Positions 15,701 through 24,700 of a stretch of 64,000 nt of DNA are shown piece by piece. Position numbers and translations under genes: made by a program. The number at the start of each line of letters is the position of its first letter. The stretch's first letter is position 1. A model generated the notes under the pieces. The model was not told where the DNA came from. It was given only the letters and a program-made list of their open reading frames with translations, and searched no databases. The stretch is from Podarcis melisellensis. Its lineage: Eukaryota. Location of the stretch: NCBI GenBank assembly GCA_964234715.1, contig OZ174278.1; one strand, given 5' to 3'.

Positions 15701-18700
15701 TAGATTCCTTCATTCTACAGTGGGTACGGGAAATATTTGGGCTCAATGTAGTTAGCTAGGCAAGTCAAAGTAAGCTGCTGATTGATGAGCTATATATTTG
15801 GCTTGAGTAATAAAGCTACTTAAGTAACAGTGCAATCTGCTGTAAAATGTAGTGCTTGCATCCAAGCAGAATAAGAGAATGGTTTGCTCATTTTGAAAGT
15901 TATAGTAATCATGAAGTCAGGCAGTGATTCCTGTATTGAAATATCCACCCCACTATCAGAGTCTGTGTCAATAAAGAATTTGTAAGGGAGTGGCCCACAC
16001 ACATTATGAAAATGTAAAATAAATGGTTACTGTATACCCGTACTATCATCTTGATTGACACTGGAAGCAATTTTCAGCAGTTCCTGTATACCCTCTAAAT
16101 CTGCTGTGGAGATCTTCCTTAACCCTATGGAGATCTAGAAAGGATGTGGTGGAATGTAGAGCTGATGGAGTACTGGTGAAAATCCTCCACATTCTACTAA
16201 TGGAAGTCTTACAGTCAGCTCATTGACATTTTTTTTTTGTTTTCATAGTTTGGTACAATCCATTCTAATACGTTGGTGGCTATACCATGCCCTGAAAAAC
16301 CCTATGTGTAGCCTGTAACCATCAATCCTGTTTATGGGGAAGTTTGAACACAGAGCTTTGTCCAAGGATTCTTGAGCTTTAAGCTGTTGGTTGATTAAGC
16401 TCTTAATCTCCTGCTAAATTGCATCGTGGTACTCTAAAAATTCAACTCTCCAATGCTATAGGGGAATATGCTGCCTTAGTAGTGTCTGATCAACAACTAA
16501 ACTTGGGCTGCAATCGAGTACTCATTTACCTGGGAGTAAGTTAGTGTTTTACTCCATGTGGCTTAATTCAAATAGGATTGAAGTGCTGGAGACCAGGTCT
16601 CATCCCTCTCCCAACCTGTGACACCTTGTCTTGCCTCAGATGCCTCTGCAAAAATTACCTTGCTTGTGGACTGGCAGGGAGGCACAAGAGTTCTCTAGAA
16701 TACTTTTTACTTGCAATTGTGATCTTTCAGTATTTTAGCTTAAATCTGCATGGGTAAAAGCCAGAAACTAATTTACTGTGACTATAAATCGGTTCGTTGG
16801 TAAGTAGCTCTCAAAGTTAAGAGGTCTCTCCCTACTTTGCTGCCAGAAGTCTTTTAAAATAGGTGTGGAGAACCTATGGCCTTCCATATATTGACTGGTC
16901 TACAACTCTGGCCATGTTTGGCTGAAGGGGATAGAAGTTGCAAGTCCAGCATCTTCTGGGATGCAGGTTTCCAAGCCTACTCTAAATATCTGCAGATTGA
17001 ATATTGTGTCTTTTATTGAACCATGATCTCTGCACAGTTCAGCAAAGTGGTCTGGAAGTCCTACTGAATTTGGGAGCAGGGAAATAATGTACAGATACTA
17101 CTTTTGCTAGTATTCTAACTACTAGATAGGAAAGTTTAGGTATAGGGTGCTTATTGTCAGGACAACTTGACTCTGCCCACTTCGTTGCTCAACTGATAGA
17201 AGTTGTGAATAGTGGCAGAACAAGGGGCATAAGATGAAGCTTGTTCAAATTCACAGATTCTAATTTCTATTAGAAACTAACAGCTCTTTGCAAGAAAACT
17301 CAGTTGTATTGGGGCTAACAAATACTGAATGGCATTGATATCCATCTATTTGTAGTTGTCCTTACCCCTTCTCTCCTCGTGTAGGTATGGATACTGTAAA
17401 GACCAATAGAGTTGTATCATAAATCCACAGAAGCTCTTATCACAATTGGTCAAGTATGTCACAAGTTCCTTTATTTTTGCAACAGACTGATACAGGTGTC
17501 CGTGCGCATTTGGAAGTTGTTGCCTCACAAGGACATGCTTAAAAACATTGAAGAGTGATTCCTGCTGCTTCCAAGGACGATCCAACACAAGAGGATAGAA
17601 TGAACCTTTCCCAGGGGAAAGCTTATTCTCTCTTGTACACATGTGGTTCATTCTGAGTTTCTCTCAGTAGATCCATAGAAAGTAATGGACCTAAGTTAGC
17701 CATGTTTGTTTATTTCAATGGGTCTACTATGAGTAGGACTAGGATGCAACCCTTAAAAGCAGCTGTATAAATTATTGAGTGTGACCTAGCACAATACCTG
17801 TTGAATCAGATGCATTGCCCTTTTCTTGAGGGAAAGGACTCCTTGTGTTGGACTGTTTGGAGCTGTTGAGAGTTTATCTTGGCTTCTCAGGGTGTCTTGA
17901 CCTGGTGAGAGGCTGGCTCCTGCCATTCCTAAGCCCTCTGTATATGTGCTTTGGCAGCAGGACGGGGTTCCCCTATCCTGGCCACCAGGAGGCAAGAGAG
18001 TGCTCTTGTTCCCTTTCCCTCTCATCGCGAAAGGTGAGCTGGTGAGTGATTGTGAATGTGGAAGCCTGGAAAGTTGACATCTTCACACGGATATTTTTAT
18101 GTTGCTTGAGTAAAATATCTTTTACAGGTTGAAGAAAGTCTACTGTACCATTATGTTGAGTTTTTTATGCATTTGAACTGGAGTGAATTATAATGCTGGG
18201 AGTTTTATGGCTCTTTTGCAGCAGGTAATGCCTATAACTATGCGGCAAACTACTATTCCAATTCGATGCCACCAAGAAGCTGTAAGTTGGTGTCAGGATG
18301 GAGTGGTCTTAAAAAATTGTCATTTGAGAGCATGCCTCTAAGCATATTGCATAGTCATAACTTGCAGTCAACTAACTGTGTGAGCATTTGTTCGTTTACG
18401 CTCATTGTCAGGCATGTTTCCTTTGCCTGCAACTTTAACTTTTAAAGGATTAATTTGAATACAGTAAACCCACAACTTACACACAGTTAGCTAGTATGCA
18501 TTCAGCTTTACATGCGTGGCAAAAAATAAAAAGGGAGCGGGGTTCAAGAAAACATTTATTTGGCAATCCCACCCGTTATTGAACCCAATGTGTTTTGAAT
18601 TTGGCTTTAGATGCAATCCCTGGAACATAAATTCTGCATAAATTGTGGGCTTAATCTACTGGCTTACTGTCTTTAAGGAAAACTACACATTAAGGAAACA

Positions 18701-21700: not shown

Positions 21701-24700
21701 GCTTGGTTTATCAAGTACCATTTGCAGAGCTGTTTTGCCCTCAGCTGGAAAGCTACAAAATTAGTACTCATTCTTGTTGGTTATTTGAATTTGGATCCCG
21801 GAGCCTTAATTATAGCTATAGCTATAGGATACTACCATAGAATTCTGGAGTTGTATAGTTATCCAAATAAAACAGTCATACGAATGTCTCAAGAACAGTG
21901 AAGCTTCTCACTGAGTGGCCTCATTATACCAGTTACCACCGACTCCAGATTTTGCCTGTCAGGAAATACCATCAGTCTCCAGGTCTTTTCACTGCTTTCT
22001 GTTTCATCTTTGCTTCAGTGTACCTGTGGACACATTGATGGACTCCGGGAAGGTCTCATTTTCAGCCCAGGTTGCCATTTTTTTTCTTGAGACAAATTAA
22101 TTGTAACTAGAATAAGATAATGACATAATTTTTGGAAGTGGTTCACGAAAAGTTGCCTAATGGCCATACTCTACTACAATGCCATGGGCGCAAAAGTATG
22201 CAGGTAGGCTTTGCTTTTGGGTTTGCTGCAGCTCGAGAGAATCATCGGCTGCTGCTTCTTGAATATAATTTGCTACATGATCACCCTGGACCAGCTTTTT
22301 AAACTGCCATCTTGCAATATTGGCAGTAAAACACCAGATTTCAGTGCCTTTCCTTGATTTAAAATGTGCAATAAAATATGGGAATTTCTCTTAAGACAGG
22401 CTGCTAATTACTCAAACATTTTCATGGTGATGGTTTGAGGGATTTTGTATCTTTACAGTGAGCATCTACACAATCAGTGATTTCATTGGTGATTTTATTA
22501 TTCCTAGGATTTGATGGTGGGTGGAATGCTGGCAGAGACAGGGATGCTGCATACAGTAGCTTTGGTGCAAGGAGTGACCGCGGATCAGGAAAATCAAGCT
22601 TTTTTGCTGAGCGTGGTAATGGTTCAAGAGGAAGGTAAAAATGTAGCTCTTTTCCCATTAAAAATGTGAATGCCACCACTGTAAAACATTCAGTAATCTG
22701 TAGAAATAGGGGAGAACTGACTGAGGTTAAGACATGTGCTTTTTGTGTTGAAAGGCTGCTTTGTAGCTCTTAGGCTTGCATTGACTGCAGCATGTTAATT
22801 TTTATGTGTATAGGGCTAGCCTCTCATTTCCACCAAGTTACTGCTGTAGGACTTCTAAAGTTTACATCCACATAATAGAAGTCCTTGTGCCTTCTTAGCA
22901 TTAGCACATAGGCCCCAGCAGAAAGACAGGGGAATGACAATTTAGAGCAACTGTGCAGTTATGGCATATATCTGGGATTGGAAGGAGCTCTTTCAGTAAG
23001 CCTTCTCCTTGTTTGATGAAGGACCAGGAGGCTGGGGCGTTCAGGGGATGTGGCAGAATTGTGTTGTGAGAGCAGTAGAGTTAAATGATAGTCCAATTCC
23101 TAATGTTGATTAAAATGCAATCTGAACAATTAAATGCCTCTGCCTGGCAGGTGTGCCACCTCAAATTTCATTGGTATTCTGTCCACAGTTGAAATATTGG
23201 GGTAATATATCCTTCTCAAGGGGATGTCAAATCTTGGGAAATAGATAGCTGTGGTGTTATACGGATTTATTGTTTAATTATATCATGAAATACTTTGAAG
23301 CTGCCTAGCAGCCAGGCAGCTTCATTAGTGTGTTTAGTACATCACATCACAGAAACTGTCATGAAAACTGGTTTTAGTGTAATTTCATGTAATCTAGGTT
23401 TGATGACCGTGGTGGAAGAGGCGGTGAATTTGATGGCATTAGCAGTCGTGGTGGTGATAGAAGTGCCTTTGGCGGCAGATTTGATCGTGGTGGAAACAGT
23501 CGTTGGTCTGATAAAAGTGATGAAGATGACTGGTCCAAACCACTTGCCCCAAGCGAACGTGTGGAGCAGTAAGTACTAGCAGTGGGATCTGGTGGTCTGT
23601 AAGTCAGGTATTCAGTGCTGTGTGATAGTACATTGAATGTTTATCTTCTAGGGAGCTGTTTGCTGGTGGGAATACTGGCATTAATTTTGAGAAGTATGAT
23701 GACATTCCGGTTGAAGCAACAGGCAACAACTGTCCTCCACACATTGAGAGCGTAAGTATTTGTTCAATGCTACAACTAGTGTGCTGCTTACACTAGAATA
23801 CCAAGGGACTACTTTTATACATTTAAATTAGCGTTGTGGAGCTGATGGTCCTTCAAAAGGGACACTTTACTTAAAAGTCTTTGTCTTTAATAATTATGTG
23901 ATTGCTATAGGCAACATGGAATTGCATGCAGATGAATGAATGCAGGATGTTGGAGGAGGAACATAACTCTCCTTGCCTCCAGCAGCACACTATATTTTTA
24001 CGTTAGGCTTTGAGAAAGATGCTTTGCTGCCTTTGTATTCAGCATAAACAAAAGGGGATACCAAGAAAGGAAGGGGACATGCCATCCTACATAAGAATCA
24101 AATGGGCTGGTGAGGAAGATGGGAAGTTTCTTTCATCTGCATTAGCCCACTCCAAGACTTGCTGGTATCCAGCCTTTTAGCAAGATGCTGGAAAATGAGG
24201 GGCAATTCTCTGCCCATCCTCTGCCTTCCCCTCTTATGAGTGTAAAGCAAACTTTTTGGGCTTTTACCAGGTTGTTTAATAACTTGAACTCTGTTTCAGT
24301 TCAGCGATGTTGACATGGGAGAAATCATTATGGGGAACATTGAACTCACCCGCTACACTCGGCCTACTCCAGTGCAGAAATATGCTATCCCTATCATCAA
24401 AGACAAGAGAGACTTGATGGCTTGTGCCCAGACAGGCAAGTTTGTGTTTGCTATGTGTTACTGCAGTGTTCTAATTGAGAAATTTTGGGGTGTTAATTGA
24501 GGGTTCTTGGGTGCAAATGGTGAGGGATAGGCCATTCCCTGGCAGCTGACTCTAGCACAACATGGACACCGATAATTTGGTAAGACTTATATTAGGATTT
24601 AAAATACCACCCTAAATTTAATGCCAGTTTCAGATTAACTTGAAATGAGTACAGGATGGGATGGAGCATAACATTTGGGTGGGATTTATGGAATGAAAAT

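Follow-up and report, generated by a model that had tools for sequence, protein, structure and literature searches.

Two frame-keeping cassette exons in intron 3 of DDX3X from Podarcis melisellensis and the stop codon that would form if the first were joined to exon 4

Can two cassette exons that both keep the reading frame depend on each other through a stop codon which exists only across one of their splice junctions? The question is raised by the DDX3X gene in a 64,000-nucleotide stretch of the Podarcis melisellensis genome (contig OZ174278.1 of assembly GCA_964234715.1; the window in the following). DDX3X comprises 17 exons on the + strand, on which the exons and conserved elements described here are located, with the ATG at 12709 and the stop at 29848. 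Its intron 3 of ~7 kb holds two frame-keeping candidate exons termed 3a (18222–18281) and 3b (21428–21559). The original prediction, derived from the letters of the window, held that 3a is productive only together with 3b and otherwise acts as a poison exon, the two exons thus forming a splicing “AND-gate”.

The sequence-level claim of a junction-made stop is confirmed as a reading-frame fact. An exon-by-exon recomputation agrees with the prediction that both cassettes (3a with 60 nt, 3b with 132 nt) are multiples of three and that the terminal T of 3a and the GA opening the constitutive exon 4 (22508–22634, acceptor tag/GAT) spell TGA at codon 72 (nt 214 of the coding sequence), with 13 junctions downstream. 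Exon 3 (15435–15485, 51 nt) ends with a G in phase 1, and all remaining joins are open, the junction codons being GCA for 3-3a, GAT for 3-3b, GGA for 3-4, TAT for 3a-3b and GGA for 3b-4 with 3b ending at 21559. The open exon paths give proteins of 672, 716 and 736 amino acids, identical to those originally listed. The GA of exon 4 therefore completes a Gly codon, including its third base, after exon 3 or 3b and a TGA after 3a. A stop more than 50–55 nt upstream of a later junction accordingly arises in the 3a-4 form only and not in 3a-3b-4. Such a junction stop is uncommon per join (~1.6–2.3% at a phase-1 join, as computed from generic splice-site base frequencies), yet many are expected per genome. 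Joining 3a to exon 13 likewise spells TGA, which implies that any phase-1 exon opening with GA gives a stop after 3a.

The use of these joins was assessed in four RNA runs (X24, X22, X12 and X6; tissues unspecified) of a close relative, organism B, which is ~95% identical in the intron. The mapped stretch covered positions 17300–22800 and a joint was reported from 3 reads or one contig upwards; exon 3 lies outside this stretch and a further 61 loose ends fall outside the listing, hence the 3-3b join is not directly visible, and the letters of exon 3 appear as loose read ends in front of exon 4. The 3-4 join is dominant with 112 reads in X24 and 235 in X22 (347 in sum). 3b is spliced to exon 4 (21559–22508, the predicted GT..AG intron) in 5 reads of X24, 1 read of X22 and one X12 contig, which has a depth of 135 versus 833 over exon 4. 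At the given threshold neither a 3a-3b nor a 3a-4 joint is listed in the four runs, and no read or contig joins 3a to anything. The depth over 3a is zero in X24 and 0.7 in X22, which corresponds to the intron level, and contigs of X12 and X6 cross it unbroken. In X24, 3a inclusion amounts to 0 of ~117 with an upper bound of ~2.5%, and no RNA record is found among the indexed sequences holding the 3a stretch. This absence neither proves nor refutes the exon, because tissue restriction or nonsense-mediated mRNA decay (NMD) would each hide it. The splicing of 3b to exon 4 in X24 at zero 3a coverage indicates that the two exons are not a pair which is either included or skipped as a whole. The dependence is one-way, 3a requiring 3b, and constitutes an implication and no symmetric AND, such that the label “AND-gate” was overstated.

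Exon 3b is a real minor spliced cassette, and among the cassette isoforms only the 3b isoform is demonstrated. Its 44 RGG-rich codons open with AT and end with a G in front of a GAG/gtgggc donor, which is confirmed by the spliced reads. Orthologous contigs were reached via short open reading frames (ORFs) over 3b, the exons of the window being searched singly, and the comparison extends over reptile and bird-like loci. In three further squamates (L001, L002 and L006) 3b is 99% identical, with one base difference across all four, and in L027, a more distant reptile-like locus, 3b is longer by a Gly codon at unchanged splice sites. Four-fold sites are invariant in 21/22 cases in 3b compared to 24/44 in exons 4–6 (Fisher p=0.0006), and this silent-site conservation places 3b under regulatory constraint. 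3b is hence spliced, frame-keeping, alternatively skipped and constrained at silent sites, as characteristic of a regulated coding cassette. An intronic block immediately upstream (21340–21427) is conserved as well and partly retained even in birds. Protein searches with 3b gave matches only to short ORFs on reptile genomic contigs, and the viper protein P0032 is without 3a and 3b. Two other matches were discarded, P0007 as an unrelated cluster member and L004 because it matches by chance and lies in unrelated DNA of apparently bacterial origin. Within 3b, a donor-like GAG/GTAATG at 21455 is kept in five of five reptile loci and would shorten the exon to 27 nt in frame; it is absent from the listed joints, and the X24 depth is greater over the 5′ than over the 3′ part of the exon.

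Exon 3a is flanked by a cag/CAG acceptor and a GCT/gtaagt donor, and is found in L001 and L006 with an identity of 86–90% and the proposed frame open in both. Its length is 60, 63 and 63 nt in the window, L001 and L006, respectively, without any stop, the difference being a 3-nt indel inside a CCA repeat. The preservation of a 3n length and an open frame across three squamates lends weak support to a coding cassette. At the 3′ end the last 13 exon bases and the first 13 intron bases are identical in the three species, including the terminal T and the donor. Compared with L001, 3a and 3b form conserved islands, as most of the remaining intron 3 cannot be aligned between L001 and the window. At its acceptor 3a has a tandem CAG-CAG, the distal AG (18225) giving a 57-nt exon and a protein of 735 amino acids and leaving the junction stop unaffected. 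L001 reads CAA-CAG at this position and has lost the first AG, which makes 18225 the sole 3a acceptor kept in all three squamates. The conserved downstream intron (18282–18380) contains, in all three, a GCATG of the RBFOX type at +47/49 and a CTAAC of the QKI type at +75 to +90; by the known positional rules these motifs may promote RBFOX- and QKI-dependent inclusion of 3a in neurons or muscle. A conserved acceptor-like site (18120–18137, ttttacag/RTTGAAGAAA, first exon base 18128), located ~95 nt upstream of 3a, is invariant in 17 of 18 columns among the window, L001 and L006. Spliced after exon 3, it would read one codon and then TGA in each of them, and the site is therefore a candidate alternative 3′ splice site that would produce a long, outright poison form of 3a. 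The distance from 18128 to the 3a donor varies (154/153/160 nt) and the frame is not preserved, while the AG of the site is absent in the bird-like locus L023.

Other readings of the 3a region were considered and rejected. For RNA structure as a cause of its conservation, the z-scores were 0.4 to -0.9 and the covariation term 0.13, and no conserved base pairing over the distance from the 3a block to the 3b block was found. A CAG/GTAATG at 18225 was considered as a donor site or as the source of a 3-nt microexon, but it is not conserved, its GT being lost in L001 and L006. The protein search with an off-frame ORF covering 3a gave no match.

We favour, with a probability of about 0.52, the explanation that 3a serves as a coding exon in certain tissues, where it is normally spliced to 3b, and that NMD clears stray 3a-4 mRNA. 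It is based on the island character of 3a, i.e. intact splice sites, an open frame and only one 3-nt indel in an otherwise unalignable intron. It is further supported by the RBFOX/QKI-type motifs, the splicing of 3b-4 at zero 3a coverage in X24, a GA invariance at background level, the ~2% chance of a stop at a phase-1 join and the route described for human DDX3X buffering (PMC11789639). According to this scenario 3a and 3b would be old alternative exons by which squamate DDX3X gains a longer disordered N-terminus. Of the two, 3b is used alone as a minor cassette; 3a would be rarer, probably tissue-restricted and activated through the downstream RBFOX/QKI-type sites, and would normally be joined to 3b, its final T opening a Tyr codon. 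The 3a-4 mRNA carrying the TGA should be removed by NMD, as predicted from the general exon-junction complex rule. With its distance of only 214 nt to the start codon, the stop comes close to the range in which early stops can evade NMD. The stop would most likely be an accident in which a protein-constrained T meets a GGA Gly codon, tolerated, as we propose, because 3a-only mRNA is rare. Its role would thus not exceed that of a unidirectional quality filter, as opposed to a tuned dosage switch. Several observations weigh against this assignment. A 3a-3b joint is likewise not listed in the four runs, which leaves the coding use of 3a putative. The substitutions in 3a cause ~5 amino-acid changes in 20 codons without a clear synonymous bias, and the argument from its 3n length is weakened by the position of the indel in the CCA repeat, where slippage alone yields 3 nt. 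The site at 18128 with its immediate TGA is the best hint that an unproductive 3a form might be under selection. Finally, the loss of the cassettes in birds was accompanied by the loss of the exon-4 GA.

The strongest competing explanation, which we nevertheless consider rather unlikely, is that 3a mainly serves as a conserved poison cassette, spliced as 3a-4 or as the long form from 18128, both of which are destroyed by NMD, with 3a-3b being rare or absent. The strong nucleotide conservation of 3a together with its flanking intron, which is typical for poison exons, combined with a weak coding signal corresponds to this idea, as does the upstream site with its in-phase TGA and the enhancer-like GAAGAA motif inside it. 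NMD would also predict the lack of 3a in steady-state RNA as seen, and DDX3X is dosage sensitive (PMC11789639). However, a poison exon does not need an open frame, yet 3a itself carries no stop and is open in all three species; only the candidate 18128 form would have its stop inside the cassette. Moreover, the 18128 acceptor scores weak to moderate (0.6/3.1/4.0) with the lowest value, 0.6, in the window, and no read supports it in the four RNA runs. Some fish DDX3X isoforms may carry GNAY as a peptide following exon 3, and this would argue for an old coding exon.

The coupling device of the original prediction, in which 3a and 3b are governed by independent regulators and the ratio of 3a-3b-4 (736 amino acids) to 3a-4 (NMD) sets the DDX3X dose, appears still less probable. 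It would account for the exact frame logic, for the silent sites of 3b being far more conserved than those of constitutive exons, and for the distribution of the T and GA. The proposed co-conservation of the latter two holds insofar as the T and the donor are invariant in three squamates and exon 4 opens with GA in the window, L001 and L002, i.e. in all squamates read. In the bird-like loci (L008–L026, assigned to birds by judgement from the exon-4 peptide) exon 4 opens with GT and both exons are lacking: 3a persists as a decayed ghost in L023 (2400–2600) and 3b as a remnant without acceptor AG in L008 (1500–1600), while L008 and L016 retain a recognisable form of the intronic block that precedes 3b. 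The bird pattern thus fits a co-conservation of T and GA at the sequence level, but it represents one evolutionary contrast in a single lineage, and GT is a commoner exon start than GA. Conservation of the GA itself has to be rejected as proof of selection, since its A occupies the wobble position of a Gly codon and the background invariance in the three GA species is 24/44 (55%) for four-fold sites and 8/18 (44%) for Gly third positions. In addition, neither type of 3a junction occurs in the four runs, and a conserved pairing connecting 3a and 3b is missing. An extended version, with similarly low odds, would combine both alternatives into a conserved switch of reptile intron 3: 3a would be coding via its proximal acceptor and 3b, and poison before exon 4 or via 18128; the T/GA pair would be selected, the length of the intrinsically disordered region (IDR) tied to the helicase dose, and birds would have dropped the module and the GA together.

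We regard as least probable that 3a has no useful splicing today and represents either a regulatory element that is conserved as such or an exon that was silenced recently, the stop being irrelevant: the zero or intron-level depth and the flat, unbroken contigs would agree with it, but acceptor, donor, frame and positional motifs for RNA-binding proteins survive a deep squamate divergence, the RNA evidence comprises only four runs of unspecified tissues, and no significant RNA structure accounts for the conservation.

By definition, a poison exon is a cassette that carries the stop codon of a transcript subject to NMD (10.1101/464404; PMC13247117). Known poison cassettes of alternative splicing coupled to NMD, e.g. 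in SR-protein genes, share with 3a the conservation of cassette and flanks, the location in a dosage-sensitive RNA-binding gene and the possibility that inclusion introduces a stop a long way ahead of the final junction. In contrast to them, 3a has a 3n length and is stop-free, and the stop exists in one junction only and disappears when 3b comes next. The filtering of forbidden exon combinations by NMD through frameshifts is likewise established for exon pairs that exclude each other or are included jointly, FGFR2 IIIb/IIIc being an example and the cluster splicing of TBRG4 essential exons another (10.1101/464404). As in such NMD-filtered pairs, a premature stop results from one of the four ways in which the adjacent alternative exons 3a and 3b can be combined, but here neither exon shifts the frame, the excluded combination is marked by a split codon and the dependence is unidirectional. 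With its split-codon stop in a pair of cassettes that each keep the frame, the DDX3X case is a small variant of NMD-filtered combinations. 3b probably resembles the extra RGG/NGY segment in the long N-terminal forms of Xenopus An3 and fish PL10; in the present squamate it differs as a minor cassette, and birds have lost it.

Human DDX3X is highly dosage sensitive and buffers itself by mRNA destabilisation, for which a route via the 3′ untranslated region was suggested, whereas neither poison exons nor nonsense decay are mentioned in that account (PMC11789639). A second route is the YBX1-driven retention of DDX3X intron 17 with NMD (PMC12183081). Both are related to the proposed gate as post-transcriptional controls of the DDX3X level but operate without intron-3 cassettes or a junction-made stop (PMC11789639, PMC12183081). 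A literature search, in which subscription journals were thinly covered, revealed no report of the DDX3X 3a/3b cassettes or of a 3a-3b coupling. Tools translating whole isoforms (junctionCounts/cdsInsertion, PMC11310779) would flag the 3a-4 stop once the isoform is seen. If 3a-4 were made and regulated, 3a would be a clean context-dependent poison exon that is missed by single-exon, length-based screens, and it would be justified to scan whole genomes for stops that arise from split codons where frame-keeping cassettes are involved. Regardless of the gate, a pair of conserved N-terminal cassettes which squamates retain and birds have lost offers a natural test of the effect of IDR length on DDX3X.

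Some further features of the locus were recorded. At 20428–20640 the X24 depth rises to 5.5 versus ~1 beside a strong acceptor at 20560 and two AATAAA motifs (20607 and 20634); conservation of this block does not extend to L001, and the listed junctions include none for it. A short repeat-derived stretch at 18940–19010 draws many partial-match reads and contigs in all four runs, and the contigs of organism B are longer than the window by ~100 bases at 18732 and show a rearrangement around 18732–18990. Downstream of the cassettes, exon 4 contains extra in-frame codons relative to other squamates (127 vs 124 nt), and exon 5 (23398–23568) measures 171 nt vs 162 in L001, also in frame. The introns after exons 7 and 8 (24436 and 24828) begin with GC and belong to the GC-AG type, the exon-7 donor being GT in L001 and birds.

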